From Podarcis filfolensis (Eukaryota), in NCBI GenBank assembly GCA_964270895.1, contig OZ185435.1: a stretch of 64,000 bases of DNA; one strand, 5' to 3'. The translations under genes and the position numbers were made by a program. Shown piece by piece: positions 6,880 to 64,000 of this stretch (position 1 is its first letter; the number at the start of each line of letters is the position of its first letter). Under the pieces are notes generated by a model. It was not told where the DNA came from, did not search any database, and saw only the letters and a list, made by a program, of their open reading frames with translations.

Positions 6880-9800
6880 CTAGCTGTTGCTCTTGCAGTG
6901 TGGAGGGCCAGCTACTGCTTGCAGGGCTTGTTCACGCAACTGGGTTGGACGAGTCAGTATGGATGTGATCTTGCTTAGCTGCAGGAGGGAGCCAGAGATA
7001 GCTGTGGGACAAAAAACCAAAACAGTAACAATGAACTCAATGCAGACACTTTTTCCTAATTCCTAGAAAGAGAATCCTTTCAAGTCTTCTGGAAGTATCA
7101 GGAATAGAAGACTTGTGAGAACAGCTGGCATCTCCAGCTAGATTTTTTCCCTAAACACCACAAAGCCAGGTAACTCCTAATGTCACATCTGGGCCTTGCT
7201 TTAAGGCAGTGCCCAATAATCTTGCTTCAGGGCAAGGAAAGGATCATAGTGATGGGCAATTATGTCTAGTAACTTAGCAAGGGAAAAGGGAATTGGGAAT
7301 GTGGAGTATAATTGGTAAGCCATGGTTCTGCGCCACTCTCTTAGTTATGTGTGAACGTAAGAGTACTTCAAGCAGGAGTAGGATGGGTGAATGATACACA
7401 AGCACGTGCTAGATTTCAGAGCAGAAGGTAGGCAAGGATCATTGAAAGCCATGGGGGGGAAAGAGATGGGTCAGTGAAGGGAAAGACATTTCTAGATTTC
7501 CCTGTTGATCCATACCAGGGCGCAAGATGGGCAGGGTGCAGTGCTGCTCCAACCAGCTCAACACTGAGTCGCAGAATTCCTTGATGTTGCCTGTGCTTAC
7601 TGTCCTGGTGTAGCTCTCAAAGAGTGGCTTAATCACCATGCTGAACTGCAGGTTGGAAGAGGTTAAGGAGCCTATGCAGCCAAGTCTCCCTGCTCCCCTT
7701 AAGCACCCAGCAGGCCACTGATGTCATGCCAAATACCTCCCCTTGCTTTCTTTCTTGCACCCTAACCTGTCCCACCCCATCCCACATGCTCACTGGTGGA
7801 TACAAGCCAGAAGCGCCAGTCCTGCAGGGTGCGCTTGCGCACATACTCTTCATAGAGTTGAGAAGCCTGATCCGACTGTGGTGGCAGCACAGGAGCTCCC
7901 GTAGGTGGAAGCTGGCGCTGGAAGTCACTGCAGGGAAGAGAAAACCCACAACTTGTTGACAGGAGTTCCCCTCTCACCTTTCAACTTGTATCCCTGATCC
8001 AATGAAAACCCCTTAAGCCAGCCCCGCAACTCACTCAATGGCAGTGCTCAGCTCTTTGATTTCCCCACGTAGTCTTTCAACTGTCTCCTGAGCTTGTCGG
8101 CGCTCATGCTGCAGTCTTTCCACATGTGCCGCACTTTTCTGCAGGAGCATCGCTTTGCTGAACTGGGGAGGTGAGGGGGTGGAGTAAAGGCGTAAAATGG
8201 ATTGGGAGGGCAAAGACCACAAGAATGGCTCCAGCAGGTTCACAAAGCAAATTGGGAGGACTGGACAAACAGCAGAGAATATGTGCCCTTCCACCCTCTG
8301 GTACAGTGGGGGATGCGTACCTTACTGCTGCTTTGATCAGGTCCTGTCAACACGAGAGTGGCAAGAGTGTTGAAGCCGGAGCTGATGACCCTACGGCGGG
8401 CATAGTCAGCCGAGGTAAGTGTTGATCTGCGACTTCCCTGCAAGAGCCAATCAAGCCATGATTTGAGACACTGCCAGGTGACTACACCTTTGGCTGTCGT
8501 CTTTTCCCACAATGCTCAAGCCAACAAGATGGGGTACAGTGGTGTGGGTATCCTTATTACCTTGGCAGTACAGCATTTGTCCACTTCCTGGGGTTTGCAG
8601 AGAGTGTTGTCCTCAGCTCTCTCCTTGGTTTTGGCGCCTGAAATAATCCCAAAAATACTGGGGTAGCCGAGTTCCTCTTAAGGTGTGTATTCAATTTCTA
8701 CTTTGGCACAGCATATAGACCAATCCAGTGAAAGCGGGTGAGATATCTCTAAGAAGAGAGGCCGAGTGACTTTGCACCCTCCTGAGCCAGCTTACCAGTG
8801 TCAGGGGAAGCAGCAGCAGAGGCAAGTGGAGGAGACTTCACTGTTGCCGAGAATGAGTTCAGCATATTCGCAGGGGGCTTTGGGACGCCACACACCTGTG
8901 GGAGAGGAAAAGCAGGGTTGAGAGAAAGAGAGAGCAGCCAAACAGAAAGATAGAAAAATACGCCGCCTGTCAACTCCAAGGAGGCAAAAAGCAGAACAGA
9001 GATAGAAGGCCTCGCAGAAGGAAGGTGGCAGAGGAGAGCATCCTTACCTGCACAGAGTTCATGACTGGAGTGAGGGGCAGTGGGGCAGGACCTAGAGATG
9101 AAAGAGATGTTCTTATTTTCCCAGCCTCTATGTATTAACCCCCAATGCATGTACAAAACTTGGCTGGCTGAAGCAGCATCACTCACTCCCTGTAACTACA
9201 CAGCTTCAGTTTAGCTGCTCACCAGTAGACCAAGTTTTTGAATGTGGCAGAATTTATTTAATGAAAAGGAGTCTGCTGCTTTATGAAATTCCACCCACCA
9301 CAACTGAAAATACAATTCGGGCCAATGATCTCTACTTAAATGCATGGCACCCTACCCACCAGAGAGGCCAATGAGCATCCTTGCCTCAGGGATCCCTTCC
9401 AAAACATCCCTAGGCCTGGTTTCCCCATAACCATTAGCGTCTCATAAAATTCCTGCATGTACCAGCCAATCTGACACCAACTGTTTGGTACCCACTTTGC
9501 CATCAGACACACGAGGATAGGAATTCTGGACCTTTATGTGTGAGTTTTAAATGGGGTAGAGAGGAAAGTTTCATAGTTACAGATTCTCTCTTCATAATGC
9601 TTGCACATTAGAAGACTCTACAGTTCTTGACAACTTTCCCCGTTCGAAAAAGCTACAAGGCACAAGAGCCTTGTTCTGAATTGGGTCAAGAAAATCTGTG
9701 CTCACTTGTAGATTTAAAAGAAATTAAAATATAACTTTAAAAAGCTAGTAAATATGCATAGTTATGTTAATGAGCTGTCATTTCACTTCTACTAATGAGT

Positions 9801-12800
9801 TGAAAGTTTTATGTTTAACTATGAAGCATTTGGACGGATGTTAACATTTGTAGTTTTGCTTGATTTACCTGGTTCAAACTGCTGGCTGCATCGAAACAAA
9901 AAGCTTAACTACACTCCGGAGAAGCAAGAAGGGGATCAAAGCAGGAATCTGGGCATAGAGGACTTTTTCTTTCCCTTTCCAAACAGCAGCTCCCAGACAT
10001 CTTTACACATATGTATAGTTGCAAGTAAGATTGCCACCTTAAATCCGTCTCCAATACCTGTAGACTAACTGAACCACTTTCCTATTCTACAGACTAGGCA
10101 GTACATAGCTTTGACACACAATTTCTGCAAGGCTAAACCCTAAATCCACTGAAGGAGATGCAGGCACTGTTACGTAATGCCTATCAGCTCAAGTCAGATA
10201 CAGTGGTACCTTGGTTTTTGAACGTCTCCGTTGACAAACATTTCAGTTTTTGAACGCCGGAAACCCAAAAATAAATGCTTTGGTTTTCAAACACGCCTCG
10301 GAAGTTGAACATGCCACGCGGCTTCTGTACTGAGTTTTCCATACTCAGTTCCATACCGAGTTTTCGGTTTTCGAACGTTTCAGAACTCAAACGGTCTTCT
10401 GGAACGGATTACATTCGAAAATCGAGGTACCACTGTATATAATTTTAAAATTCTGCAGTAACACAAAAAACTATCTCCCTGGACCACATATTTTATTTTT
10501 CCAGTACAGAAAAATGCTTTTGCTTCCAATGATTCCCAAGTATGAAGCTAAACTCCAGCTTCAGATAATTATATCAAAATAAACACTAATAATGCATGCA
10601 GTGTTTAAATTAGGTATTCCAAAAGTTGATCCTTGTGAGATTTGCTTGAGAAAACAACAACCAAAAAGAAAGGAGAATTCTGCAGTATGACTTAAAACTC
10701 CAAATGGATCTAGAGAAGCATTGTAGTCTAGGTCAGCGATGCCTCAATTTCCCCTGCAGAGAGCCAGTCCTTGCAGGGACATACCAGTTGCAAGCAGGCA
10801 GGGGAGCGGAGCACCGGGAAGGGCTGGCTGCTGGCTAGAGGAGGGTGCTGGAGCAATCCGCTGGAGGTGTCTGCATTTCCCATCCTTGGGTGGAGGAGCA
10901 GAGACTGGCACAGCAAAAGCGTCCCGAAATACAGACGGAGAATTTGTTTCTGATCCTGTGTGCGTGATGACAGAGAAGACCAAAGTGGTTTGAGGCTGCA
11001 TGCGCAAGATGGGAGAGACAGGCGGCGGGCTGATCCTCAGTGGGGAGGTGGGGAAGAATGGCAGGAAGGTCTGCTGTCCATTCAAAGGTACAGGCGGCTC
11101 CACATCCAGTGAGATGGGAATGGGGTTGAGAGAGTCTCCAGGCGGTGGGAGATCCTTGGTCCCAGGGGCAATGAGAGGTGTATCTGGGTTGCACTGGTTC
11201 AAAGCACTAGCATCCGTTACTGCAGGAGCCTAAGAGGGGGGAGAAGAGAGTGCAAATCAAACACAACTCCTGAGTCCAAGCTGGAGATGGCTGCACTGAA
11301 AATCATTTAAGTGGGAGAACTCCCACTGCTCAGTTTTTTTGCAATGCTGAGAAAAGGCTATTGCCTTTCCAAAATCAAAATTAAGCACAGACCAATATCT
11401 GCAGTAAGCATCAGGGGCTGCAGAAGCCCAAGGAGTTTGTAAGCTATCAGATAAATTTATTCTCCTTACCTGGATCGTGGGCTGAGAACGACAGGAAGTG
11501 ATGAATTCTGTGAAAAGAAAGCAAAGATTTAAAAGGCTGGGAGGAGATAAAGAGCAACTGGTAGAAAATAACTGGCTGGTGTGTCTGAATCAATTAAGCA
11601 AGGAATCATCAGGATTTCACCATACAGGTAGTATGCTGGCTGTTTGGCCTTAATTCATTCATTCACATCCACCATACAAGAAGACATCAATTGGTGGTTT
11701 CGAAGAAAGATGAGACCTAAAATCCAGGATATGTCAACTAAACCATTTGGTAGAGAAACTCAAGTCAAGAACTGGAGCAATATGCAGGTGGGGGCTGCTA
11801 ATTTCAGAGTTATGTGACGGAGTGGCAGGAATGAGACTGAAATAAGCTCAATATGTAGATGCTATACTTGCAAGTAGAAATTTTGAGATGACAAATTCGT
11901 AAGTTTAGGATTTTTCAAATTAAGAATTCATACAAGATTAATTTGCCTACTTTATTCTTCCTGTGAAAAGGGGATATAGAGTGCCTCTGAAGAATTTGTC
12001 CTGGCTGATTCAGAAAATGGGATAGGGGACAAACAATATATAAAGCACAGTATGCATGTGATTATATGGAGAATGAGTCTTCTATTAGAGCATTGGACGC
12101 CCAAAAGAGGATTTTTATGTGCACACTGACTGATTTAAATAATGTCTAGTCTTACCAGGACGTATCATGTTTGCTCAGCAGCATTCTGCTCTGGCCTTGG
12201 GTGAACTAGAATTTCAGCAATGTCAGGTTGGAAATAGTCTCCTCTCACCAGTGATAGCTTTCAGCCCACTTTGGTGACCCAGACTCAGATGTTATTTACT
12301 TTTGAGCTCACAAGTTAATCTTTCAAAACTGGTGATTAACTTGTGGGCTTAAAATAATAATAATACATGTTTCTATTTGATTTTTGGGCCTTGATGACAC
12401 ACTTTTCATATTTTGTTCAGTTTTCTCCCTAACAGTGAATTTAGTAAATATGCAAGCTGCAATTCTGAGGAATCCAAGGGCTCTTTTACAGATAAACACT
12501 GCAGGGAATTGCAGCTGATCAGGAGATCCTGGCAGCATGTACCCAGTAGCATTTATAAACAAACTGAATTCTTTTAAGTGTGTACAGTATGGATACATAA
12601 TTTAAACACAGTCTGAAGTGGTCTTAAGAAGCCATACAAAGTGCTTCAGAGGATGTCCTTCAGCTTTGTGATGCGCCACCTTACCACTAAGTACAGCCAT
12701 ATAAACCTCTGCTATTACCTTGAATGGGGTCCAAGTCCATAAACTCCTCCCCAAAGATGGGGTGCAGTTGGGTCAGGGTGGGCTGGATCATATCCGCATT

Positions 12801-15800
12801 TCCCTGGTGAGCTGAAGACACAAAATGAGAAATAATATCACTCGCTTGCTACTTTGTTCCATAGCAATTGTTCTCTGGTTCACAAGCAAGGGACTGGCTC
12901 TCACATGGAGATACTTCAAAAGCTCTCTCCACCCTTTAGAGGCATCTGTACTAGCCTCTGGGGACAGTGGAGAAAACTTAAAGGGTTTCTTGGTAGAAAG
13001 GGACAGATCCAGAGATAGATGGAATGAGCACAAAGCAAGGCCTCTCACCAAGGCCACGGAGGTTGGGGCCACCATAAGGGTTGCGGCTAGAAATGAAGGT
13101 GTCCAGAAGTGCATCCAGGTCGTGCAAGGGGTCGAGGTCCATGGGGCATGCATCTGTTCCATCCGTTTTCAGCTCTGCCCTTGGAACATCATCAGCTACT
13201 TCCTGTCCAGAATGGGAGAGAAAGAGCTGTGAACTCCAACTTCAGGCTAACTCAAATGAGGGGCTGGAATACTGAATGGCTGCGGACAACCCCCAAGCTT
13301 TTTTAATTCCACCCTCTGCCATGGGGAAAGGGGAATCTGGAGGGTGCAATATAGGAACAAGGCATTAAAATAGCACCTGAGCAGAACCATAGACGGGTTT
13401 ATCCATCTTCTTTGAAGCCTATAACAAAATGTACAGAATGTTTAGGATTAGGCTACTGAAAGTACAATTACAATACTTAGCTAGAGGAAAACCATAGGTG
13501 GCTAAATAAAATCCTACCTGGTTCATTGCTGCCCTGGACACATTTGGGAAGAAGGGCTAGGTATAATGTACTATTATTATTATTATTACTACTACTACTG
13601 CTACAACAACAATGAACACCTGAGGCCTCAGCAAACCATTGCAGGCCACAATAATCACACAGGGATAGCTGGGTGACCAGTGTGTGTCTTTGTGGAAGTG
13701 AGAGAGAGGGCAAGAGAATGAGAGCCTTTGGCAGCTGCGGAAATGAGTCTGTAGGCCAAGGCACCTATCAGAGTAAGATAGAAACGTAGCTTTGCCAGTC
13801 TAGTACCAGATCACCTTATAACCACCAGATCCAGTCTATGATAGCCTGGCAAGAAGCATCTAGAAAATCCACCTCCTTCAATGGAGTTCCAAGGTGCTTC
13901 TGGATTGGCTACCTGATTTCCTTGGTTGACACTAAAAAGGTGGATGCTGGGTGGATGAACTTGGGTGGAACATGTCATCTAGGGGTGAAGGGGAGCTATA
14001 TGAAGTACAACACATCTTGCTGGAGAAGACACTTACCTGGGTATAGGAAAACAACCTCCATTTGTGATATTCCCTGATGACAACCCCAATTTGGCGTTTC
14101 CAGTACTTTCCTTCCATGATGACAGCCTGCCAAATAAAGGTGCAGCCAGGGGTCACTTACAGAAACGCGTAATCTGTCTTCTTCGTACGTTCTTAAGTAA
14201 GAAAGGCCCAAGTAACCTTTGCTCACCTCAGGCTTGCGGTGCACATCTACATCACTGCACTCTAGTGGGGTCACAAAACTGCACACTGGGTTCTGCCGCT
14301 TCTCCACATCTGCATCCAGAATGAAATAAAAGAAAAGGGGCTGTAATCTGCAGTACAGCTTCAAGCAGGACCAAACAGAGAAAATGCTGGCTCGCTGGCT
14401 GGCAGTCGCTCCCATTTCAGCATCCACTAAATAGGGCAGTAGAGCTGAAGAGCTTTAAATCCATAAGCAATTAATATGTGACTTTTGCTAGCATAAAGCT
14501 TTGCAAACTTGCAATACATAATTCTGTGTGAAACAATCTCCATGGTTGAGGAAGTCATGGAAAACACGTGTAGGGATGGAGGAAGAACCCATTTTTTGTG
14601 GATTTATACACAGAATTTGGTGGTTCCCACCTAATCTGCCCATACTGGATCACCTTTTATACGGTTGGTTGGTTTGTTGTTGTTGTTGTTTTTTAAATAC
14701 CTTCTTCCAGGCTACTTACACTGCAGATACCAGGCCCTCCAGATGGCATTATTGAGTCGAATCTTGTCACGCTGTAGCAGTTTCAGCCCTTTGAAGGTTT
14801 TCCATTTGGGAGAGACAAGTTTCTCACTACAAATGAGAAAGCCAAAAAAACCACCTCTTGTAATACCAAGTATATCTGGCTTTCAAGGGGAAACAGGGCC
14901 AGGCAACAACCCAAAGAAGAAGAAGGCAGCTCAAAACACACTGAACAGGAACATCTCTTTAATAAGCTTGACTATTCTATAGCCACAGTTTATTACTAAT
15001 CTGTGCCAATAAAACTAAATTCTGCACTCAAAACTATAAACTGTAAACTACTCAGATGTCTACAAATGTTCACCTTTTGCACAGATTGACCCAATATGCC
15101 TGCTTTATTCTAAACCTCTCACTGGATGTTGATTCCTCCTCAACTTTTTAGAGCAAACTGTGGGAGAAGGAGAAAAATGAACAGGTTAGAAGTAGCATAT
15201 GCTGATAAGTGTAGAACATAATTATAGACCATATATAGAGATAAGAAGCTGTGTTGATTACAGAAGCTTTGCCCACAGAACTACATGGCCCTCTATGTAT
15301 ACTGCCTTCCTGTTTTTCCGATGAAGCTCCTCAACGAAGGACAAAATCCTGCTTTTAAAAAGTATGCTATAGATACCAGCCTTGGGGTGGAATTCCATGT
15401 GGCAATTATGACAGAAGAAAAAATAGCCCTGGCTTTAGGTGGCAGATCTGGAAATACCCCCCACTCCCAGCCTTACTATAAGGGGTCTTCCCCATTCATT
15501 ATTGTTGCAGAACCCCATCTATGAAGTGTCAGTGAGTGCTGGACAACTATTTCCTGGACAGAACCTACGGTAATTCAATTATTCTGAAGAAATGCAGCAT
15601 AATTTAAAACACATCCAGTTAAATGATTTGTGTTTTGCTATTAATAACCAATTTGTTAGTGAGTGTATCTCTTTACAACAGAGAAATATAGTATTGACTT
15701 GAGTAATCCAAATGATTAAAAACATCTTGGAAGGTTAATTCAGTGGTTTATTTCTTCCACTGTTAAAGTAAAACTGTGCCTCACCTGTATGTTCTTACGA

Positions 15801-18800
15801 AGGAGAAGAAATTATAATGAGCCAGCATCTCCTTAGGAATACAGGCAGACACTGGCAGCTTGCATTCCACTCATGCACTCTGTTTAATCAGTAGCAACAC
15901 ACACTCATATTCTGCCCTTCAGAAGTTCACGTGAAGGTGCACAAACATCCCACATGAAAATCCTCACACTAAGCGTATTGGACCACATTCTCAGGCCACC
16001 CTATTGCACTCTGCCCCATTACATTTCAAACCTGGCAGCTGTTTCACTGAACAGTTGTGTAAAAGAAAACAAGATACTGTTCAGAACCCATGCTCCTTTG
16101 CTGTTCTGCCACAACAGCTTCTTATTCAAAATTGCACCTGCTTGAGACAGAATGAATAATGAATAATCCCTGGCAGATAGATCAGTCACAGTTCTAATGC
16201 ATAGCTGTGCAAAGAGTCAATATATGATTCTCTGTTACTATTGAGCAAAATATAATGCCTATTTCACTGGCTGGGGGCAGAGACTTGCACTGCCACTGAA
16301 ACCAGTGGGCTCAGGTATATGGTAAACTGAGCTTTTGACAATGTTAATGTCAAAAAGGACTCTGTTGAGGGGATTTCTTCAGGCATTCAAACTCCTCATA
16401 CTACCTTTGTCCTTTTGCTTAGTCCAAGATGACATCTCATAATGTTGTGGGAGATTAACTAGAAAATACCTAAAGGAGTCAACGTTTGAAATGTCATAAT
16501 GCTGGAAGTCAAAGAACAGACCCAAAAATCCCAGTTCTGAGGATCTATTCCAGTTCACTAGGTTGTTGAAAATGCTGGAACACTTTTTTTCTTGATTTAA
16601 AGCTGCTTCATAGATATATATTTACAAGGGGATGATCTCAATGTAGGAAAAATGCATGCAGTGTTACATAAAAAATGGCAGAAGCAGTAATTTTGCAGCA
16701 AATATATTGGTTGGGAAGCTAGTCTGCAACATACTGCTGTAGCATCCGCTTGAATGTGCAACTCAGGTAAGAATACAATTTTTATATGAAAGGACTACAA
16801 CTATTTAGTTCAAAACTCTATATGCTAACATCAAGGCCAGACATTCCTGGGAACGGGATACTGGTTAAAACAAATGCTGTCTGTTCTAGTGTGGTACTTT
16901 TTATTTTAATTATTTTTAGAACTAGGAGAAATCCCAAAGGTGAAGACCAGTGCAGGATAGGCTGTTTGGCACCAAGAACCAGAAAAGAGAGTTGTTGTTT
17001 TACCATCACATGTCCAAAATGGTCTATGCAATCATGTCAAATGTTACTTTAAAAAAGAAACACTAGAATTTCTAAACTTTTAAGAGGCACACAGCCAGCA
17101 ATCAAGAGTTCTGGGTGCCATATGCAGCGAGCAGACTGCAAGTTTTTGATCCCTAATCTAGTCCAAGTTATGCCCTGAAGCACAGTAATGTAAAACATTC
17201 CAGAGAGTTGCCCACCCAGCCTTTCTTTGAAAGTTTCCAAGGAAGCAAATTTCATTACCTCTCTAAGCAGCTTGTTTCATTGCTCAAGTTTCTCTCCTAC
17301 TTCTCAGAAATGTTGGGGGGAGGGCGACAGCCAATTCAGAAAATTCAGGGCATGTATTAATTTTCAACATAGTACAGCACAGGTAACAATAATTAAAACT
17401 AGACTGTGCAAAACAAGCCAATTAGTTCCTTAACATAAATCATTAAAATTGTGCACAAGAGTTCACATTAAAATTCTATTAGGAAGCTAAAGGGAGCACA
17501 GGAAGAAATACATGTCCTGTGAAAACTTCCTGTTTATATAATTTGCCAAGTTTTTGTGCTTTAGCAACACTACTATCAGAAAGGGGACAAAACAGACCTT
17601 TACCACAATGGATATACTTTCTGATATTTAATCCCACATAACCCAGACAGCTTTTTGATATTATGTCTCTAGCATCTGGCAGGGACAACTTGAGTCATGG
17701 TCCATTTCTCACTTTAATACCCATGATAACTATCTACCCACTACACTCTGTCAAATAAAAATTTCTATTATTTAAGACTTTCTCTCCTTTCCACACATTA
17801 AAGGAGTCTGACCTGAGAGCTGATTAAAGATTAAAGGACTTGACTGCTTAATGAACAAGTCAACTGGATTATGAGATACACTGAAAATGGGGTAGATAAA
17901 AACCAAAGTAATATGTATGGGTCAGAAGCACTGTCTAAGCAGCAAGATGTGCTTTTCTGACATGATTTTCTGGGAAGACTAAAGTTAGTGTCAATTCCCC
18001 TCCTCTATGCTGTGCTTATATGAACATATTCCCATATGCCACTAGAGACGCTATTGGGTAGCTTGCAAATACAGTAAAATAAGTAGCAGTGCAATCCTCT
18101 GCACCTTATCTCAGAAGTAACTCCTACAGAGTTCAATGAGACTTATTCGTTGATTCTAATCCCTTGTGTGTAGAACTGCAACCAGAGTAAGTAAATAAAT
18201 AAATAAATAATACTGTGCCAGAAAGCAAGTGGTAGTAGAATGCTGGAGAACCAGGCACAACTCTATGTCATATCTAGGCCCCCTGCTTTTTTTTTAAACT
18301 ACAAAACTGGATTTGTTGGTTTCAACAGATGTATGCGTTTCTGACTCTAAAATGTCAGTTTCGTTCCTTGACTACTCTGTTCTCACACGTGATGCCTGAG
18401 AACCTCCCTTACCATAAGTGAAAGTTCTTAAAGTGGAAGGAAAGGTTGCAGGGGAGCACTTCTTAACTGGCAGCTACAAATCTAGATTTATACACTCATT
18501 TAGATTTTAACTTGGCATGGCAGACACGAGAAAGGCAAGCTGCGCCTTTGAAATGCCTTCTTGGGTGAAAATGCGCTTTATGTCTGTAGTTACAAGGAAT
18601 CCGAGGCTTTTACTTAACGATGCCAAGTTACCTACAGATGGATTCTCTTAGTAGTATCGTTTACCTGCATGCATAGTAGTATATCTTGCGTATGAATCGC
18701 AGGCTAATTGGTCGTGCTGCAGTTCCCACAGCAGGCACTCTGTAATCCCAAGGCATAATCTGGTTCCCTGAATGCATCCCGAGAGGCAAGGGCCGGAGGC

Positions 18801-19265
18801 AAGAAAGGAAGCCACCGGGCGGGCCCTTCTCTATCCCTTCCTACTGTGTGTCTCCACATTTCCCCCCCCCCCCCAGACACACACGGCCCGCTGTGCCCCG
18901 TTCGCTTGGGGGCTGCCCTGCCCGCCCCGCCCTTACCTGTAGGCGAGCGTCATGCACTCGAAGAGCTTCGTGAGCGAAGGGTCGATGCTGAGGGCTCCGC
19001 TGCTTCGAGGCCCGTAGCGGTAGCACAGGCACGCGGCCTCGTCCACCGTGTCGAAGTCGTAAGCGGCGGAGGCCAGCTGGGCCCCGTCACCAGCTTTCCC
19101 GGCCGCGGCCTTCTGCGCGGAGCCGGCCCTTTTCGCTCGCTCCGCCGCGCTCGGCGGGGCGCCTTGGCCTAGCTGGCTCAGAGCCGCCTCGGGGTCCTGG
19201 TCCGGGTCGGCGTGGGGCTCCGACACCATGAAGTGGCCGCTGTGGATGATCTGCGGACGCGACAT
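6880..19265 (-). CDS. Mondo-family (MLXIP/MondoA, MLXIPL/ChREBP-like) bHLH-ZIP protein, probable third paralog, 17 coding exons, about 740 aa
   Basis: Exons (minus strand): 19265-18937, 14826-14720, 14309-14227, 14126-14037, 13418-13377 (tentative), 13202-13049, 12811-12719, 11507-11470, 11229-10785, 9091-9048, 8895-8796, 8637-8561, 8437-8321, 8162-8035, 7927-7804, 7645-7516, 7001-6880. Total 2223 nt, open frame, all GT-AG. Motifs: QIIHSGHFMVSEPH, SIDPSLTKLFECMTLAYSEKLVSPKWKTFKGL, RDKIRLNNAIWRAWYLQY, EGKYWKR..VVIREYHKWR, GNADMIQP, SKAMLLQKSAAHVERLQHERRQAQETVERLRGEIKELSTAI, RTLQDWRFWLFSMVIKPLFESY. An alternative in-frame ATG lies at 19313. Confidence 0.93.
10201..10435. mobile_element. Tc1/mariner-pogo (Tigger-like) MITE in intron 9 of the Mondo-like gene
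   Basis: TIR CAGTGGTACCT / AGGTACCACTG with TA on both sides. Confidence 0.88.
13572..13612. repeat. Compound (TAT)(TAC)(CAA) microsatellite
   Basis: tattattattattattactactactactgctacaacaacaa. Confidence 0.85.
17130..17300 (-). mobile_element. CR1 LINE 3' end fragment
   Basis: The minus strand encodes SLETFKERLGGQLSG, the CR1 ORF2 terminus. Confidence 0.65.
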
Positions 19266-19620
19266 CCTCCCAGGCGGAGGCCTCGCTGCCTCCCTCGCCG
19301 TCTCCCGGCGCATCTTTAGAACGCGAGAGGCAACGCCAACGCCGCCATAGCAACGAGGGGCCGCCGCCGGCGCAAACCCCAGCCGGGAAAGAGTCGCGAC
19401 AGGTGCCAAAATGCCGCCGTAGCAGCGGAGGAACAAAAGAGAACGCGGATTCTACCTCTTCCCAGCAGCTGCCCTGCCGTAGGCTCCCATAGCAACAAGG
19501 AAAGAGCGTTCTGCGCATGTGTCCGAGTCCCCGCCCCCTTGCCGTGGCCGCAGGTCATGATGGTCACGGTAGTTTTGTTTCAACACCCACCTAGCGGCGA
19601 GAACGAGACAGTTACTCGCT
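18780..19620 (-). promoter_or_regulatory. CpG island / proximal promoter of the Mondo-like gene
   Basis: CpG-dense stretch over exon 1 and upstream. X-box-like CCATAGCAAC at 19345-19354 and 19487-19496; NRF1-like TGCGCATGT near 19512-19520. Confidence 0.8.
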
Positions 19621-20269
19621 AGCTAGCATAGACTTCACTGGCTAGAGTGACATACAGGGATCTACTTCCGGTATTTTAGACTTGCTTTAACATTTAACAG
19701 TGCAGCTCTTCTGCCTACAAGTCAGTAAACACAGGGCTTCTGTGCGCAACTTTTCTGGAGTGCAGCTGATAGGGGCACAATCCAATTAACGTGCCACTCA
19801 TACTGAAACCCGATCACAGACGTCAACCTTTCCCTTTTCTTGCGAGGAATCGTATTCGGAATAAAGGAATTTCCCTTAAAGAAAGGGAAACGTTGACAGC
19901 TATGAACCCGATACATGTTTTATGTGGTGGCCTGGAAATTTAAGGCAGCCTTAGCCCTGTTTCCACCCTTCATTCAGTGACTCTACATTGCAAGGCTGCT
20001 GAAAGCCATGCTCCTCTGTAATATTGGACTGTACTAGCAGTGGCAGGGCACTCATTTCCACGCGAAGTAAGGCCTGAATTAAAGTATCAGCTGCTGTCTC
20101 TCTGAAAACTTTCTAGTTCTGCTTCTCAGTCAACAACTACGCTGAAATCTTGACTCACCGCCAATTACCAAGGGCAGCTCTCGCTTTCAGATTATACATC
20201 CAGCTTCCCCATATCTGACGAGAGACAAGCTACTCTATTAAGTTCCTAGCTCTGTTCTTTTTAGCAGGC

Positions 20270-20560
20270 ATGAGATGGCGGCGACGTAAAATTACGCAAC
20301 GACGCCATGGCGCAAGCAGGAAGCGGACCGAAAGGGGCGCTGGTAACTGTAGTTTCTCCCCACCCTCCGCTAGAGGTTCTGATGTTTACATGTAATGAAA
20401 CCAGGCTCGCCAATTCTCCCTGGGATTCGTCACCGCTCGGAGAAGTTGGGGCGAGTGTGACCATGTGCTTTGCTGTCTGCACACTCTACTGGTCACATGG
20501 TGAGCTGCGCCCTCATTCTGCATAGATAAAACTCAGCTCACCGCATGATTGAGGGGCCCA
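20270..20560. promoter_or_regulatory. Second small CpG island with housekeeping-promoter motifs, between the SSH3 3' end and the Mondo-like gene
   Basis: YY1-like GAGATGGCGGC 20272-20282, TTACGCAA 20292-20299, palindrome CGCCATGGCG 20303-20312, ETS-like CAGGAAGCGG 20317-20326, ZNF143-like ACTACAGTTACCAG on the minus strand near 20340-20353. Confidence 0.6.
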
Positions 20561-20861
20561 CGGAAAACTGATTCTGCAAACAGCCAGATGTTGTGGGATT
20601 CTTTACTGACCCGTTGTTCCACCTAATGCAAATGGCCAGTGGCTAAAATGACCAGCTATTACCATGCGGCCACACTGTCTTTAACAGAGCCCCACAGCTG
20701 TGTGGATACTGAGTAGCCTAGCCAGAGGAAAAACTGTCTCCCGTTTCCCTCCCTCAGGTAGGCGAGTTTGTGGTCACAGATTAGGTCCCAAGCATTAGGA
20801 CACACATTTCAAAGAAAAGGACAAGACCAGAGTTCCAGCAAGTGGAAAGTTAACCAACTCT

Positions 20862-20867
20862 TTTATT
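20862..20867 (-). terminator. Likely SSH3 polyadenylation signal AATAAA
   Basis: TTTATT on + at 20862-20867, about 680 nt past the SSH3 stop codon. Confidence 0.65.
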
Positions 20868-21541
20868 CCCAAGCAGAGTGAAGCTGGCAATGGCACAGTG
20901 GTTGTGTATGTGTGTGCAAAAGTAAACGGGGGCCGTTTCTTCCCCGGTTAGGATCACAGTGAGATACTACTTCCCTGGCCCCACCTCATAAAGCAGGGAT
21001 GTGGGGAGCCCAGAGCCCTCCTCGTGTGCTGGACCACTACTCTCATCATCTCTGACCATTCACCATGCTGGCAGGGCTGGAGATAGTTAAGAGCCCAGCG
21101 ACATCTTGGGAGGCCACAGGGACCCCTGCGGCTTTAACAAGGGGTAGTGTTATCAAAAGTGAGTTGAAGGAAGAAGCAGAAGTGCCCTGCAGTATAAATC
21201 TTGGAGCTGTGCAGTCTTCAAGGCCATTTAGAGGTCTGAAATAAGTGGTTGGACAGAGCCCCACAAGAGCGCTGGTTGCCCCCCAGTGCAGTTCCATAGC
21301 TATGGAAAGAGATGGAGAGCCTGTGAAGCACTATAGTCTCTTAAAGGGATGGTCTCCCTCCTCTTTCCTGCCCTTCTCCCAGGCAGCTTTAAATTGCCAC
21401 TTCCCACACCAGCTGCCAATAGTGCTTCAGGCAGAGGAAAGAAGCCCCCAACAATAGGAAGTGAACCTGTTTGGCCTTCAGGGCTCCATTTATCACTCCA
21501 CTTATGAACAGAAGAAAGGCGGAAATGCCACAGCAAGGGTT

Positions 21542-23933
21542 TCACCCTGAGTTGGGGTCCATGTCTACGCTGGCCTGGCGAACCATCCGCCGGGACCGGG
21601 AGCAGGGCAAGGAAGAACAGAGGGCAGTGCTTTCCTCAGGTTTGGATTCCTGAGGAGAAGGGGACCAGAGCTTGTCTGGTCCTTCGGGATCTGTGTGTCC
21701 CTCAAACTCCTTGGCCCGGCTCACCACCAGGGCAGCATCAGCCAGCTGAGCCACAGAGAGCCGGTGTTGTAAGGCGGGCCTGCGGCCAAATGGGACAGGG
21801 CCCTCCATGCGCTGGACAACTTTGCGCACCCTGCCTGGTGCTGGGTAGTATGAAAGCTGCTTGCAGACATGGCGACGTCCCCGGTGAGCCCTCCGCCCAC
21901 GTCGCCTGGCCCTGCGACCCTGAGCCTCCTCTTCCTCTGGCAGTGGCACCTTTGCTGTAGAGTCTGTTCCTGACCCTGAATTCTCTTCATTTTGGGGAAA
22001 TGGCTCAAAGGTCACAGTCTTCTTCTTTTCATCATGAAGAAATACCTGTTGGAGGAAGAAGAGGTAGATTGAATGAGGGCCAGCAATTACAAAGGATTTT
22101 TCTTCATCCTGCCTCTACCATTCATCTTCGCATTAGCTGAGGTTTCAGATCCACTGATTTATGCTTTGCCATTTTGTTTCCCTTGTATGCCTTGAGGCTC
22201 CATTATAAGTTCCCTTACTCTTTCAACTTGCCTCTCTCTGGAAGCATGCCCTTACATGACCCTCTTACCTCTTCCTCAGCAGCACACTCTGGTACAGAGA
22301 TGTGGCGTTCTGGGCTGTCCATTTCACTGATGCTGCGCATGACAGCATAGAGATTGATGCGTTCCCGCCTGAGCGTGGCTGGCTTCTCTGGCACTCTCAT
22401 CGTAGCCAGGTGTCTTCGCACTTCCTCAGCTCCAGAGTCATCCGATGCCCCAGGTTCTTCTGTGGCCTGAAGACTGAGCCTGGGACTATCAGGAGGGTCC
22501 ACAGGATGGTGAGGTTCTTCAGGAGGTTCCCGCAAAGGACGAAAGCAATACTGGGGGGTTGTCACTGGCTCCTCTGGTTCTTCTTCTGAGCTTAAAGTCT
22601 CGTAGTATGGGCTTCCTGAAGGATCACTGCTGGCATCACTTATATCTGGAGAATCTTCTGAGTGGGCATCTCCTGCCTTTTGTTCCCATAGGCTGCTGTG
22701 TCGGCTGTGTAGTAACATGAGGTGAACAATGTAAGAGATTATTCAGCAAGGAATGCTAAATAAAGAACCAAATAAAGAATGGACTTTGAATTACAGTGAG
22801 AAGCATTAATTACACATATTAAAGATAATCACAATGTCTAATTTTTGCTGCACTATTAGTGTGGGACAATTTTGCTATCAGTGGCTCCCTGTTTAAGATT
22901 AAATATCGTGTGCATAACAATACGAAACAGCCCTTTTTAACTGGAAGAAGTGCTTTGGAGTGGAAGGTGGAAATGGAGCAGATGGCATGGATGCCGGATC
23001 TTTTCCTTGCCACTCTTTGGCACCCCCATCATTTTTTCCCACACGGAATCTTTCCTGTTTGCCTTTGCACACAGGTGCTTAGAATCCCAGGAAGGGGAGA
23101 TCTTCTTTGATCCCAATAGCCCCACTGAAAGTAGATTTTCCAGTCTAAGAGGATCATCATGCTGTTGCATGTAACATGTAGTTTGGCTCTTGGACAATAA
23201 AAACAAAGCCTTCTGCTGTGGTCTGATCAGGCTGGTCAGCTGCAGCTCCTATCAGTCTCCCTCACCCTCCCCACATACATACACAGTGACCAGACCTGCT
23301 CTCCCTCCCCTTGGATTTACCTTGCGTCCAGAATGCCCTGATAAAGCTCCAGCTGTCTCATGAATCCTGGATTGGGGTGGACAATTGGGCGTCGTTCCCG
23401 TACATGGGAAAGGGCCTGCTCAAGTGACCACCCGTACTCCTTCATGGCATATGCAATCACTGTGGAGCCAGAGCGGCTCACGCCCATCTTGCAGTGCACC
23501 AACACCCGAGAGCCTTGCGCCCTGTGGGGAATGAATATTTGCTATAAGCAGGGCTACAGCATCACCCAGGACAGTCATGAAATTCAGCATCCAGTTGCTG
23601 TACCTTCAGCCACGCGTAGGATACCCCAGCTTCTTGGCCTAACTCAACACTTGCCAAGGCATAGATTAGCTAAATTATGCTGAGGCCACTCTGCTGTGAT
23701 CATGATGAATCCAAGCAAGTGACTATCATTGCTGCTTGGAAAACATTATGGTTGTTCAACAGCCAGTGTGGTGTAGTGGTTAGAGTGCTGGGAGGAGATG
23801 GATGAATTCAGCTGCTTGCTCTTCCAAACATGTAACTGGCTGTGTCAAATCTGACAGAGATCAAAAGCTAGGAACTGATGGCATCATACTTCTTAATGAA
23901 GTAGGGGGTGTATTGGGGCAACCCAGTATGATG

Positions 23934-23984
<51 letters not shown>

Positions 23985-26900
23985 AGGGCTGTGCCAAATT
24001 CTCACCTACAAAATATTCTGGGGTGAAAGGAGAGAATGGGTTGACAGTCCTACCTGGTATCACAGGCCCTCTCAAACAACAGCTGACATTTCATTCAGGG
24101 AGGTGGGGGCTTTTTGTGACAAGAGCCCTCCTCTTCTACCTCAGCCCTTAGATTCCTACTGAAAAGCCCATTTCTGTGCCTACAATCCCGTTGACTAGAT
24201 GGGGACCATGTTGGTAAGCCTAGCTTGCAATACATGAGTGCTGCAGCTGAAATCGCAACTACCATCTTGGTGTACACTTCTCACCAGGCAGCCGAAATGA
24301 AGTTGTAGGTTTCCTTCCAGTGTGGCAGTAGCTGTGAGGTTTCCTCATCGTAGAGCCGGACATTCATGTACGTAAAGTGCTCTGGGAAGAAGTTGTCAAT
24401 CTCACGGGTGACATTAAGGATGTGGCTGACCCTGTAAGGCAAGGCAAGGAGTAATCGACAGAGAATGTGAGCAGCTCTTTTTCACCATGTTTTTAGCATG
24501 GCCTCAACTAACTAAACCATGTCCCATTTCCTAAACAGCCCCCACTGCAGTTGCTCAGTAACTCAGAGTCGGGTTGGAATGCATAGTAGAAATCCCTTCT
24601 GACTAGAAGGCAAGTTTACACGGAGAGGTGTGGCAAATGGTCATCTCAGTGTCCATGGAATCCAGGTCAGATGAAGTTCCCGAAGGTACTAGTCTTGCTC
24701 TCTGAGCAGCATCTTTTGGTGACATACCTGTTCCTTTGAAGCTCCTCAAAGTTGGCTGCATTCCATTCAGATCCCTGGGACAAAAAGGAACAACACCATG
24801 CACAGAGCTCAGTCCCAGGCGAGTGCAAATAGTTCACAAACATTCAGCCATCCTGCAATTGCTCATTAAATACTCAAAACCGAATACATTTATCCAAATC
24901 ATGTGGTAGAGTCCCTCCTAGCTTATACCATTGCAGACTGGGCAGGTGAAGGAACTGAGGTTTTGAATATGCACCCAACAGGAAAAATTGCCAGCATGTA
25001 GAAAGATAGCAGAGAGTCATCTTCCTGATGTGCTTGGTTGTGATTTTTATGTGAGGGAGTAACCGTGAACCGCCATGAGACCTACAGGTATAGGGCGGTA
25101 TACTAATTTAATAGCGCCTGTCCAGTTTCTTAGGTCAGCTTCCAAGGCTGTTCTGTATGTTCCACCACCTGTTGAGGCTAGACTGATGGCCACCAAAGAT
25201 GGAGCCTTTTCAGTGCAAACCATCCATTTAGAATTGCAGCCTTAGCTGCTCGCTGTGATCTTCAACTTTGTATGAGGTAAAGAATATAAATCTGCTGCCC
25301 CATGCTATCTCTCAAGAAGGCCCTGTAGGTAGTATAAGGGAGAGGCTTTACAGGGTGCTTTGCTTCCTCTTATGGTGGAAGGGAAGGCAAAGCCTGGAGG
25401 CCTCAAAACAACAGCAAGGCTTCCATCTTCCTGCCATTCCAGGAAAGAATTTTGAGGACTCTTAAGTTGAGAGGAGGGACTGCTATTTTTAGGGGCTTGG
25501 AGCTCCAGTTTGCTGGCATCATGGATCCCTCTCCTGTACTTCCTCACCAAGTAGAGATAGTCAAAAATCCTGGAGGGCCGATCCATCTGAGCCATAATGA
25601 GAAGCATTTCATTGTCAATAAACTCCTTATAGTCGTTCAGGCTCCGACCGGCTCTCCGCTCCAGTTCTGTACGGATCTGCAGGAAGAGAGGGAGGGAGCT
25701 TGTGAGCGCCTGAGGTCGCTTTTGAGCCTGGCTGCTTTTTAATGACATGCCCATTCCCTGTCCCTCACCCATCACTCCAACCCCTATACATACCCCTGCT
25801 TTCCCACATTCCCTTCCCAGTCCCCGTTTTACATAACTTGCTCCCATACCCTCTCTCTCTCTCACACACACACCCTCACACACGTCTCCATTCCCTCACA
25901 TTCTCTCTCCCCGCCCCCTCCTCCCTCACCCCCTTGGCCCAACATCCCACCTCCTTGGAGGTGATGTTCTCCAGGTCAGTGGTGGCCATCACCTCACGCA
26001 GCTTGGCCCGGATCATCCGCTCTGTCATCTCCTGTGCTGTCGGCCTGAGGCACAGAGACGGAGGGTCGGCAAAGCTCTTGGCTCGCCAGACTCTGCCCCA
26101 GACACCATGGCACGCCTAGAGCATCCCTCCCCCATTGGCAGTAGGGTTACAAATCTTGACACCGTGCCAAAGCTTTGCATTTCCCTAGATAGCTTTTACG
26201 CATTTGTAAATGTGCTCGTTCATTTATTGCATGTATCTCCTGAGCTTCCTCTGAGGGCCTTAACGATTACTCCCCCCCCCATCTCAATTTTATCCTCACA
26301 AGTTGCTGTGAGGTAGGTTAGGCTCTGACTGACCCAATATCACCCTGTGAACTCAATGGCTGGGTGAGAATGTTAACCTGGGTCTCTCTCAAGTACTAGT
26401 TTGGCACCCAAACCACTCCACTCCAGTGCACCACAAAAAGTGATGCTACGTGACTTGAACTGGGAGTGGGCTTTTGCTCTGATCTGTGTCTCTGATCAGC
26501 ATCTCCCTCCCTCCCTTATTATTGCAAAAAACAAAAACAAAAACAAGGACCCTTCCCTTTCATGACCTACAGAAGAAGAACTTTCTGCACAGTAGTCCCT
26601 AAAACTGGCTAGCAGGGCCACCTGAAATGTCTTTGCTTTGGACTACTGCATGGTATTGAGTTCCACCTTGGAACCACTGCAGCTCTGCTGACTACATCAT
26701 TCACAGCCTATAACCAGCCCTAGGAGGGGAAGGGCCATCACTGACTGGTCAGAGAAGGCTGCAGGAGAAGTGGGCCGCACAGATTCCAAGTCGGACATGG
26801 CTAGCCATTCATTAATACAGCTCTGCTCCGAGTTCACAGCCTTCTGATACCACTCGGTCCAGCTCAACGCACTGCCTCCTGGGAAATGGTTGTTGCAGAC

Positions 26901-38000: not shown

Positions 38001-41000
38001 GTTGGCTCTGCCATGGAAAAACCCAGCATGACATAATGTTCCTGTTCCAAGCTGTCCTTTCTGTGCCACAAGCACAGAACTGTTATGCCACCTCTGATCC
38101 TGAACATCAACAGGACTTCCATACAGGGCTATGTATTTTACAGGACCCAACCGATGGCCTGAGTTTGTGCATTGGTGTTTGTTTTGGATCATTTTTTATT
38201 ATTTCAGAAGAGAGAAGGACCAAGTCTGAGCACTGAAGCCTAAGGTCTTGGAAGCCTTGCTCTGAATTCTGCAATTTCACAAGCAGGTTCCCAATTTATC
38301 TCAGCACCAAAAGGGTTAGAGATGTTCTCTTTTTATGAGGGGGGGGGAAGTAAAAGAAAGAACCCCAAATGTCTCATCATGCAGCTAATCAAATACTAAG
38401 GTTGCATGCTACAATTAGACACAGAATGCAAAGATCATCCCCCTTCACAGAAGCTGGCTTGGTTCTCAACCTTATTTGAAAGAGCTGTTGAAGCAGCTAG
38501 CCTTTCATTAGGGGCCTACAAGTCAGGGCTGGATCTGGGACCTATGGGCAACAAATTCCAGAAGGGTGCCATTTTCCTACCTCCAATTTCTTGTCTTTGT
38601 GTCATTAAAAAAAACACTTCAGAACTGAACAGAAGGTCACCATATTGATTTTCACTTCAGGTGGAAAACCTGGGCTGGCTCTACAGTGAATATGGGATTC
38701 TGCCATAAAAGGGATGCTTTTGTAAACCTGCTGGTTCTTGGCCTATATAAGAAGCTAGAACACTTGCTGAAGACAAAGGTGACCAGTTAATAACAATCAT
38801 AGAATTGTAGAGTCGGAAGGGACCCTGAGGATCATCTAGTCGCCAGTATTATTATCCCTGCACTGTAGATGGTGGGGCTGAGGCCAAAAGAGAGTGGCTT
38901 CTCCAAAGCTACAAAATGAGTTCCCTGCTAAGGCAAGGGTCAAACCAAGGACTTTGCAGCTCAAGCCGTTAGCTACTACACTAATTCTTAGCATTCTGCA
39001 CCAAGCCTGGACATCTTATGTCCCACTAAGCTGAGTGTTCCCTGCGGACCACATCTATGGGCTGAGAGGTGCTCTCCACCATGTTTTTTTGTAGGTCCAT
39101 ATCCCATATAAGCAAGAAACTAGAAGATTGTGTGTGTTTCACAATCTGTGATTGGTGGTCTGTGTTTGCCCTGGTGGATCACAAGCTGTGCAGACCTGCA
39201 CAATGTCACAGTTTCACAGCTGAGGGCTCGTGGGTGGGTGGGAGGGAATCCAGCTTAGAAATACACAGTGTGGTTCCATTTTAGGACACTGCTAGACTCC
39301 CGTCTCCTTGGAATGGTTGCAAATATTTTCCTGGAGCGGCCTTGAATTCAGGCTCTTGCATAACCTTATCTATGTGATTCCCAGTCTGTTGGCAATTTCC
39401 TGTGACATTTTTAAGCATGGAAAAAAACACAAACCTTGTCCCTGCCACTTCCTAATTGCCAGCTCCTTGCACAATATCTAATTACGCTTGAAACGCAATC
39501 AGCCCAGCAAACTGCCAAGCTTGGGGTATGAGAACTCTGGCGCTAGGCACCCCAGTGCAAAGGGACACAGAAGTATCTCAGGGTTGGTGTTCCGGTGTTC
39601 CGGGGTGGGGAAATCTTGCTTTTCTGAGGCTATTATGCAAGGGATATTTTTTGCTGCCTTCCACGGGCCCCTGACGTTGCAATCTGCAAGGAACCGGCAG
39701 GAAGTGGCAAGTTGTGAAACTCCCTGACAAGTCACTTATTAATGCCCAGTTCTCCTACACAGGATCCTGAGCTGTCAAGAGCTGATTAGAGGAAGAAAGG
39801 GGGAAGGAGTAAGGACTGGGGAAAGCAGATCTGTGGGGACCCAAGCAAGGAAAGGCAATTGACCACTGTGGCATGCGTTTGACAGGCTTCCTTACATGGA
39901 GAATTGAGAGAGAGAGTTGATCAGGGAGGGAAGGAATCCCACAAGAAGGCATCCTGTGTGGGGCAGAGAGGCTCAGGCCAAAGGAGATGAAGGGGCGTTT
40001 CACAGCTGGCCCCTGCTCTCTACAGCAGTCGCAATGAGGAGGGACTGTGAAGCTCCAACATTCTGGCTTCACGCAGCCAGATTATTCCACTCTATATGAA
40101 CCCCACATTCCACTCACCCACCCACCCAGGAAGGCTACGAGTTGTGCAAGCACCCAGCCCAAGGAAGATGCTGGTAAAATGCCTCCAGCATACCTTTCTG
40201 GGGATGCCACATACTCAAGATCATGCCTTTGTATGCCTCTCCTGCATACAGGCAACCCAGAACTGTTTACAATAAGGTTACCAGATGTCCCCGTTTCAGA
40301 TTTACAAATCAGTCCCTTGACAAAATCCACTGAATTTGACTGAAGTTGAAACGTGTCCCTGGATTCACTGAAAAAAATCTGGTAACCTTAGTTCTGTAGC
40401 CACAGCTACCAGCACAGAGGTAGTTGCTTCTGCTTGGACATTTTAATACTGCTCCATAAGAGGTGTTAACATAGGAAGCTGCCTTAGACCAAATTAGACC
40501 ATTGGCCCACCTAGTTCAATATTATCTCTACGTGGTCTGGCAGTGCCTCTTCAGGGTGTCAGGCAGGGGACATTCCCAGTCCTGTCTGGAAACTCTGGGA
40601 ATCGAACCTGCAGGCGGAGCAGATGCAGTCTAGAACATAAGAAGAGCCTGCTGGATCAGGCCCAAGGCCCATTTAATCCAGCATCCTGTTCTCAGAGTGG
40701 CCAAACCAGATGCCTGCAGAAAGCCTGCAAACGGGGCACGACAGCAACAGCAGCTGAGGTTTCCAGCAACTGGTGTTCAGAAGGATTGAGGCAGAACATA
40801 GCCATCATGAGGATCTACAGGCCTTCCCCTACAAATGATGGCTTTAAAAAGAAGAAAAAAACCCATCCTTTTGACACTCTGTGACTTACACTGAATGCAA
40901 GTATGACAGAACAGCTAAGTGGGGTTCGTGTTTCAGGTTGAGACTGGCCCACTTTGAGCGGCAAAGGTGGGAAACACGAGTCCCTGATGCAGCAGGTAAA

Positions 41001-41567: not shown

Positions 41568-42000
41568 GCGCGGCTTGCTGCGCCCTTCCTCCGCTCGCAG
41601 CGCGTGGGGAGCCGACGGGGAAAGATCGTGCCACTCGGCGCCGCTGCCGCCGCTGCAGACAGCCTCCAGGGGGCGGGCGTGCCCAGCCTTCCGCGCACTC
41701 CCTGGGTCACGCCAGGGTGGGACCTGCCGGCCGTAAACTTTCTTCTCCTGCTCCCGGCCGCCTTAACCAGGAAGCTCAAGGATGCTGCGCGGCGGAATCG
41801 CGCACGTCCTTGGCGGGAGGCTCTTAAAGGAACCAGCCCCAAGACGCGGGAGGGTTTTCCCCAGCCAGGAGCGGAGGTGGGAGGAGCGTCGGGCTGCTCA
41901 GGGCTCGCTTCCCCAAGCCGCAGTGGCACCCTTCCATCACAGGGACCAAGGCTCAGCCCCGGCACCTATTCTGAGTGCTGCTAGGCTTGCGTATGGTGGG
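41100..42000 (-). promoter_or_regulatory. CpG island / SSH3 promoter
   Basis: CpG-dense region spanning SSH3 exon 1, GC box GGGGCGGG near 41669-41677; GC-rich flank continues to about 42700. Confidence 0.8.
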
Positions 42001-63920: not shown

Positions 63921-64000
63921 CAGTCAGATATCCATTCACCCGAGAGGAACTGGAAGGGATCCCAAGGGTCATCTAGTCCATCCCCCTGCAGTGCAGGAAT

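Follow-up and report, generated by a model that had tools for sequence, protein, structure and literature searches.

A third vertebrate Mondo paralog with a remodelled basic region in salamanders, caecilians and sauropsids

The Mondo gene of the window and its exon 13

We analysed a 64,000-nucleotide (nt) stretch of DNA from Podarcis filfolensis, referred to here as the window, whose minus strand carries a complete gene of the Mondo family. This gene is a third vertebrate Mondo paralog, distinct from both MLXIP (MondoA) and MLXIPL (ChREBP), and its basic region, encoded by exon 13, is remodelled. The coding sequence (CDS) comprises 17 exons and 2223 nt and encodes a protein of 740 amino acids (aa), with its sole stop at the end; the window contains no N run of 5 or more bases. 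Exons were located by phmmer with exon 1 and then by tblastn of the best full-length relative, ortholog P0002, and the splice model, built by hand, runs along the minus strand from 19265 to 6880, with AG at every acceptor and GT at every donor. Public records label the gene 'MLX-interacting protein(-like)', an automatic name. Its protein shares 98.1% identity with the counterpart from the Podarcis raffonei cluster (P0142) and about 96% with those of Lacerta agilis and Zootoca. The window gene and six exactly mapped orthologs share the 17 coding exons that have been described as the ancestral Mondo gene structure (Singh and Irwin 2016, PMC4766361). The features on which the argument rests are as follows.

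6880..19265, minus strand: full extent of the CDS of the third Mondo paralog ('Mondo3'), from tblastn with P0002 and the splice model; no internal stop
12719..19265, minus strand: exons 1-7, N-terminal glucose-sensing module (Mondo conserved regions (MCR) I-V, GNADMIQP motif), from invariant blocks and identity
8321..8437, minus strand: exon 13, basic region, helix 1 and loop; 117 nt, phase 0-0
8417..8419, minus strand: basic position 5, Leu (CTT) where canonical proteins have His
8405..8407, minus strand: basic position 9, Asp (GAC) where canonical proteins have Glu
8393..8398, minus strand: basic positions 12-13, Arg-Arg kept (CGC CGT)
8035..8162, minus strand: exon 14, helix 2 and leucine zipper, from tblastn and the splice model
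6880..7927, minus strand: exons 15-17 (7804-7927, 7516-7645 and 6880-7001 including the stop), DCD/WMC domain

Exon 13, which lies between the acceptor ttgcag and the donor gtacgc, translates without a stop into 39 residues, GSRRSTLTSADYARRRVISSGFNTLATLVLTGPDQSSSK, beginning GSRRSTLTSADYARRRVISSGFNTL. In the usual numbering of basic helix-loop-helix (bHLH) proteins, which we use throughout, the basic region is RRSTLTSADYARR, in which position 5 is Leu and position 9 is Asp. On the minus strand, R1 is encoded at 8431-8429, L5 at 8419-8417, D9 at 8407-8405, R12 (CGC) at 8398-8396 and R13 (CGT) at 8395-8393, and positions 10-11 are Tyr-Ala. The translation and the codon coordinates agree with the original prediction, made from the letters of the window, which had placed these substitutions and the retained Arg pair in this exon.

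The length and phase of exon 13 mean that skipping it keeps the reading frame. Predicted isoforms from snakes and sea turtles (P0175, P0176, P0178, P0181, P0182 and P0184) omit exactly its equivalent; in Crotalus tigris, for example, isoform X2 has 708 aa and isoform X1 747 aa. Such a product is without the basic region, helix 1 and the loop, and carries helix 2, the zipper and the DCD. Intron 15 (7646-7803, minus strand) has the donor GTATCC at 7803-7798 and a branch-point-like motif, TCCTTAAC, at 7669-7662, ending 16 nt upstream of exon 16, which is the pattern of a U12-type GT-AG intron. In the axolotl, the third Mondo gene spans 650 kb.

A third clade of gnathostome Mondo genes

Maximum-likelihood trees recovered three gnathostome Mondo clades, each with 100% support, and placed the window gene in the third (100/100). 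The MondoA clade contained sharks, a chimaera, ray-finned fishes, lungfish, crocodilians, a bird and the echidna, and the ChREBP clade contained ray-finned fishes, the coelacanth, the goat and caecilians. The third clade, whose inner branching agrees with the species tree, sits on a long stem branch of 0.4-0.6 substitutions per site. ChREBP and the third gene occur together in each of three caecilian species (Rhinatrema, P0296 and P0185; Microcaecilia, P0271 and P0319; Geotrypetes, P0285 and P0321), and crocodilians carry MLXIP (P0230, P0246) and the third gene (P0154) in different genera. A profile search based on ten clade members recovered third-clade genes only from salamanders, caecilians, lepidosaurs, turtles, a crocodile and ratites, with scores that fell from 743 bits in the third clade to 686 bits or less for mammalian, bird and fish MLXIP proteins. 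Mammals, frogs and ray-finned fishes yielded no third gene in the searches run.

The copies from birds, namely emu (P0180, L006), ostrich (P0179) and king vulture (P0068), are unusual in several respects. The emu protein has Asn at position 9 and Trp at position 2. The ratite stem is long (0.33) and its composition skewed, with a GC content at third codon positions of 0.80 in the emu. The king vulture record, flagged LOW QUALITY, is the only one from a neognath, and no further neognath copy appeared in the searches run.

The neighbouring genes likewise set this locus apart. The order in the window is POLD4, the third Mondo gene, slingshot and ANKRD13: the plus strand carries, near 2750 and 3100, two POLD4-like exons, FDLSWQYGPCTG and GITRLQRWERA; a DEK_C exon of a slingshot-type phosphatase flanks the Mondo gene at 25308-25895 (minus strand); and an ANKRD13-type gene, with ANKRD13_C and UIM exons, occupies 46470-46775 and 56431-57027 (minus strand). 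We take these flanks to match the ANKRD13D-SSH3-POLD4 neighbourhood of human 11q13, a site without a Mondo gene. The branching of the third clade with respect to MondoA, ChREBP and lamprey Mondo had a support of 81/51 in one tree and came out as an open fork in another, so that an origin in the early vertebrate genome duplications is an inference from the paralogy of the flanking genes. MondoA and ChREBP, for their part, are linked to BCL7, CLIP and VPS37 paralogs (PMC3177325). Three stretches of the window are GC-rich (18001-22000, 40001-44000 and 62001-64000; 0.51-0.59, where the background is about 0.38-0.49); the first spans exon 1 and the likely Mondo promoter, and the other two may be CpG-island promoters of neighbouring genes.

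A divergent ortholog of MLXIP or MLXIPL is ruled out by the trees, by coexistence with the canonical paralogs and by synteny: the window gene lies neither inside the MondoA or ChREBP clade nor at the locus of either. It does resemble MondoA and ChREBP in having the MCR I-V module, a bHLH-zipper, a DCD/WMC domain and 17 coding exons, and it falls within the vertebrate Mondo radiation. It differs from them in forming a clade of its own at the POLD4/slingshot/ANKRD13 locus, in lacking H5, E9, Q10, K11 and K17, and in having a far more diverged bHLH-zipper-DCD portion. The Mondo family has been described as having 'only two paralogs' (PMC3177325), and two vertebrate members are likewise given in a later account (PMC4766361). 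A literature search for a third vertebrate Mondo paralog under a name of its own returned unrelated papers only.

Conservation, selection and history of the basic region

We compared the basic region across the third clade, taking one sequence per genus (41 genera of salamanders, caecilians, squamates, tuatara, turtles, a crocodile and ratites), with that of 152 canonical Mondo proteins ranging from invertebrates to mammals. The counts in the third clade were as follows.

Position 2: R in 36
Position 5: F in 30, L in 6, S in 2, P in 2, H in 1
Position 7: S in 37
Position 9: D in 40, N in 1 (emu)
Position 10: H in 16, Y in 11, C in 11
Position 11: A in 26, T in 11, V in 4
Positions 12 and 13: R in 41 each
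Position 14: M in 36
Position 16: I in 41
Position 17: S in 38
Positions 37 and 40 (loop and helix 2 lysines): K in 41 each

In helix 2, K40, A41, L43 and L44 are invariant. Among the canonical proteins, by comparison, Glu9 is present in 152 of 152 and His5 in 148 of 152. One of the four position-5 exceptions is the MLXIP of Gavialis (P0246), which has Asn in place of His (RRIKNISAEQKRR) and keeps E9. On these counts, the third clade carries the signature S-x-D-x-x-R-R-M-x-I-S where canonical proteins have H-I-S-A-E-Q-K-R-R-x-N-I-K. The window gene lacks the canonical H5-I-S-A-E9-Q-K-R12-R13 arrangement, and of the His5/Glu9/Arg13 set of the group B (CACGTG) readers it has kept R13 alone.

The original prediction had asked whether L5 and D9 are fixed in orthologs, and had named substitutions private to this assembly or incipient decay among the outcomes that would undo it. 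Asp9 proved to be all but fixed, and position 5 is mostly Phe, with Leu in six genera. Since 40 of the 41 genera, from salamanders and caecilians to sauropsids, have D9, both a private substitution and incipient decay are ruled out. The Podarcis raffonei cluster and Lacerta agilis share the basic region of the window gene, and that of Zootoca has a single difference (T6A); identical residues in independent lacertid assemblies, together with the clade-wide D9, rule out sequencing error. The RRxT motif that the prediction had listed as a retained site of the protein kinase A type fared less well: only 12 of the 41 genera have it, most of them non-toxicoferan squamates, and it is replaced by RRAG in turtles and by CRSS or a close variant in toxicoferans.

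Selection was assessed with gene DNA from Lacerta, Python, Anolis, Tiliqua, Heteronotia, Chelonia and the emu, onto which the annotated proteins were mapped exactly. All seven orthologous CDSs are intact, six with 17 exons and one, a partial record, with 11. Estimated by crude counting methods over few codons, which are enough to reject neutral drift, the ratio of nonsynonymous to synonymous change per site (pN/pS) among squamates was 0.26 in the N-terminal module, 0.55 in the proline-rich middle, 0.28 in the basic region, 0.21 in helix 1-loop-helix 2, 0.21 in the zipper and 0.20 in the DCD. A parsimony count over 13 basic-region codons on an eight-taxon species tree gave 29 synonymous and 25 nonsynonymous changes, for an omega (the corresponding rate ratio) of about 0.33 and a one-sided binomial p of 4.5e-5 against neutrality. 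On the same tree, R12 underwent 4 synonymous and 0 nonsynonymous changes and R13 underwent 2 and 0, and the D9 codon is GAC in six taxa, GAT in Anolis (a synonymous change) and AAC (Asn) in the emu. Omega was about 0.17 for helix 2 and zipper, about 0.22 for the DCD and about 0.2-0.3 for the whole gene; even the emu copy gave 0.25 against the turtle in its C-terminal half. The remodelled basic region has been kept by purifying selection since before the amphibian/amniote split.

These results leave very little room for the view that the gene is an artefact or is decaying, whether through assembly or sequencing error, as a pseudogene or as a fast-evolving MLXIP or MLXIPL ortholog. The automatic public name, the low-quality king vulture record and the N9 and W2 of the emu could be cited in its favour. 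Against it stand the 17 intact exons in the window and the intact, exactly mapped CDSs of seven other species, the low omega, the same residues in independent assemblies, and a separate clade that coexists with the canonical paralogs in the same species or order and has different synteny. A pseudogene is excluded by the intact CDSs and an omega of 0.2-0.3, and for squamates and turtles the artefact or decay explanation as a whole is already refuted by intactness, omega, clade and synteny; overall we regard it as extremely improbable.

An outgroup to the tetrapod genes indicates the order in which the changes arose. P0323, a protein of 876 residues encoded by intron-less transcript contigs of runs SRR6291289 and SRR6291290 (L008:943-3573 and L009:760-3390), is the sister of the entire tetrapod third clade (100/99), whose members are joined by a branch of 0.40 with 100/100 support. 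Its basic region, RRSSHVSAEHVRR / RRSSHVSAEHVRRCNIN, has H5 and E9 intact, but Q-K has already given way to H10-V11 and K17 to Asn. Helix 1 of P0323 is TLASLVLP, as in most members of the tetrapod clade. The replacement of H5 and E9 is therefore derived and the remodelling was stepwise. Since the sister protein has lost Q10, K11 and K17 and yet retains H5 and E9, the former losses are the older. In this sequence of events, Q10-K11 changed to (H/Y/C)(A/T/V) and K17 to Ser (Asn in P0323), after which, on the tetrapod stem, H5 gave way to Phe or Leu and E9 to Asp; R2, S7, R12, R13, I16, K37 and K40 stayed fixed. P0323 is a natural intermediate and can serve as a comparator with H5 and E9.

Dimerisation, DNA recognition and possible roles

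The N-terminal glucose-sensing module, MCR I-V, is present in full. Several blocks of it are invariant in 10 orthologs (IIHSGHFMVSEPH, LFECM.LAYS, SPKWKTFKGLKLL.RDKIRLNNAIWRAW, REY.KWR and NADMIQP), and MCR1-4 are 65-71% identical to those of MondoA and ChREBP, which are 68% identical to each other. Conservation of the module to the degree seen between MondoA and ChREBP makes it reasonable to suppose, as the original prediction did, that the protein is glucose-gated.

The C-terminal half presents a different picture. An HLH followed by a leucine zipper is recognisable, with the heptad leucines kept, and the DCD/WMC domain aligns over its full length at 49-51% identity to MondoA and ChREBP and retains the WRFW, KPLFESY and LEQHCTLP.LRP motifs. 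The original prediction had described helix 2, the zipper and the DCD as well preserved; they are indeed recognisable and constrained, but they are only 36-55% identical to MondoA and ChREBP, compared with 74-79% between those two. The Pfam HLH profile scored 23.0 bits for the Podarcis protein P0142, 25.4 for Gopherus and 20.0 for the axolotl, around the gathering score of 20.7, as opposed to 37-52 bits for canonical Mondo proteins. The match in P0142 covers profile positions 12-53 only, so that the basic part is unmatched, and exon 13 scanned alone reached 13.7 bits, below threshold. Divergence thus extends beyond the basic region to the whole bHLH-zipper-DCD module. One explanation of this divergence, and of the long clade stem, is that the HLH-zipper-DCD no longer pairs with Mlx and that the protein dimerises with itself or with another partner. 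However, the kept heptad leucines and DCD motifs, with an omega of 0.17-0.22, argue against such a switch, and no data here point to another partner; we consider it improbable.

What, then, does the remodelled basic region do? The reading we favour, which we hold with about as much confidence as doubt, is that the third Mondo protein has attenuated or altered DNA recognition as a heterodimer and is not a DNA-blind sink of the Id type. It would dimerise through its HLH, zipper and DCD, most probably with Mlx, a partner assumed from family membership, and the conserved sugar-sensing module would still gate it. Its own half-site would lose the canonical contacts, in which Glu reads CA and His reads the flanking G, while the Asp-x-x-Arg-Arg core and the loop and helix 2 lysines would most likely remain on the DNA. 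The heterodimer may therefore have lower affinity, a relaxed or shifted half-site preference, or both, with the partner reading a normal half-site, and the protein could act as a sugar-gated modulator or competitor at sites resembling the carbohydrate response element (ChoRE), or drive a partly different target set. This reading rests on the loss of the base-reading H5 and E9 combined with the retention, under selection, of the Arg pair, Asp9 and the loop and helix 2 lysines.

Studies of other bHLH proteins provide precedents for changes at these positions. The E32 of MAX is a hydrogen-bond acceptor for the CA of the E-box, the G is read by R36, and R35 makes a phosphate contact; a MAX E32K homodimer no longer discriminates specific DNA from non-specific, and MYC/MAX-E32K is still found on the E-box, a precedent for a dimer with one defective half-site (bioRxiv 10.64898/2026.04.01.715400). 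For Pho4, STAMMP measurements showed that E259D did significantly less harm on a variant site than on the cognate E-box, an epistasis published beside specificity-altering mutants of H255, which likewise were less harmful on a variant site (bioRxiv 10.1101/2020.06.22.165571). Pho4 E259D and H255N and MAX E32K resemble the third Mondo protein in being substituted at basic positions 5 and 9. They differ from it in being laboratory or disease variants of homodimer-capable group B proteins, not naturally fixed in a Mondo protein, and the MAX substitution is to Lys and not to Asp.

Several points weigh against this reading. The Mlx partnership is, as noted, an assumption; both base-reading residues, H5 and E9, are gone; the net charge over positions 1-17 is +1 to +4, compared with +5 in ChREBP; Pro occurs at positions 3-6 in five lineages (amphibians, crocodile, ratites); and the Pfam HLH score is marginal, at 20.0-25.4 bits against a threshold of 20.7. 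The conservation of D9, R12 and R13 could also serve helix capping, nuclear import or a partner contact. In addition, the predicted isoforms that skip exon 13 mean that the protein may act without its basic region and helix 1. Finally, a ChREBP basic-region mutant, R673A/R674G, and a dominant-negative Mlx both block the glucose response (Ma et al. 2007, PMC1761440), and the effectiveness of the former as a dominant negative makes a decoy role mechanistically easy.

Such a decoy, the first of the two functions offered by the original prediction, would be a natural dominant negative that binds Mlx or MondoA/ChREBP complexes without binding DNA and titrates Mlx in a sugar-dependent manner. The loss of H5, E9, K11 and K17, the lowered charge, the prolines, the isoforms without exon 13 and the intact sensing module are all compatible with it, and the engineered proteins provide a model, in that an impaired basic region is combined with dimerisation surfaces that, here judged from sequence, appear intact. 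Conversely, a DNA-blind protein has no need of R2, S7, D9, R12 and R13, and yet these are kept in 36-41 of 41 genera; R12 and R13 have changed only synonymously, with an omega of about 0.33 across the basic region; K37 and K40, of the DNA-backbone type, are invariant; and the engineered mutant destroys R12-R13, exactly the pair that the natural protein keeps while replacing H5 and E9. Id and Emc, HLH proteins that sequester a shared bHLH partner, are the natural analogs of a decoy, and the likeness lies in partner sequestration. Id proteins lack a conserved basic region, however, whereas the third Mondo protein retains its S-x-D-x-x-R-R-M-x-I-S core upstream of helix 1 under purifying selection. 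The evidence leans away from a pure Id-like decoy, both because the basic region is constrained, with R2, S7, D9, R12, R13, K37 and K40 invariant or nearly so, and because of the Pho4 E259D precedent. We judge a decoy unlikely, though far from negligible.

At the other extreme, the protein might bind ChoREs and E-boxes nearly normally, tolerating D9 and F/L5 and differing for the most part in how it is expressed or regulated. It has kept R12 and the R13 that reads the central G, and a crocodilian MondoA likewise lacks H5 (N5). Natural ChoREs contain imperfect E-boxes that are bound cooperatively by heterotetramers via the Mlx loop, such that one weak half-site contact might be buffered. Nevertheless, E9 is universal among the canonical proteins, its MAX equivalent, which reads the E-box CA, is required for distinguishing specific DNA from non-specific, Pho4 E259D is deleterious on the cognate site, and four more DNA-facing or backbone positions have changed alongside. 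Near-normal binding therefore strikes us as quite unlikely.

A bolder reading is that the third protein, dimerised with Mlx, uses Asp9 and Phe5 to read a distinct, asymmetric element other than CACGTG and so controls a separate nutrient-responsive regulon in non-mammalian tetrapods, having been remodelled in steps. We think this possible, if doubtful. Should it be correct, the clade would provide a natural series for dissecting the evolution of bHLH specificity. Class I bHLH-PAS proteins (AhR, HIF-alpha, SIM) also lack Glu9 and keep the Arg pair and, with ARNT, bind asymmetric sites in which the partner reads the canonical GTG half-site. The resemblance is a lead for mechanism only, as these proteins form a separate family that dimerises through a PAS module and has neither zipper nor DCD.

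Overall, the functional interpretation first proposed for this gene, a decoy or a factor of altered specificity, is partly supported. The third Mondo gene is a real, ancient and selected variant, a paralog absent from the family literature, and the functions suggested for it derive from its sequence. It adds a member to a Myc/Max/Mlx network that has been described with exactly two vertebrate Mondo proteins (PMC3177325, PMC4766361). The basic-region Glu has been regarded as invariant in that network, and here is a gene held in a non-E-box state by selection. It raises the questions of whether a Mondo:Mlx dimer can work with one non-canonical half-site reader, what a Glu-to-Asp change at bHLH position 9 does in a natural heterodimer, and whether sugar sensing in reptiles, turtles and amphibians involves an extra competitor or an extra set of targets. 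Because the gene was not found in mammals, its biomedical reach is indirect; its chief value would lie in what it may reveal about the evolution of the network and about comparative metabolism.

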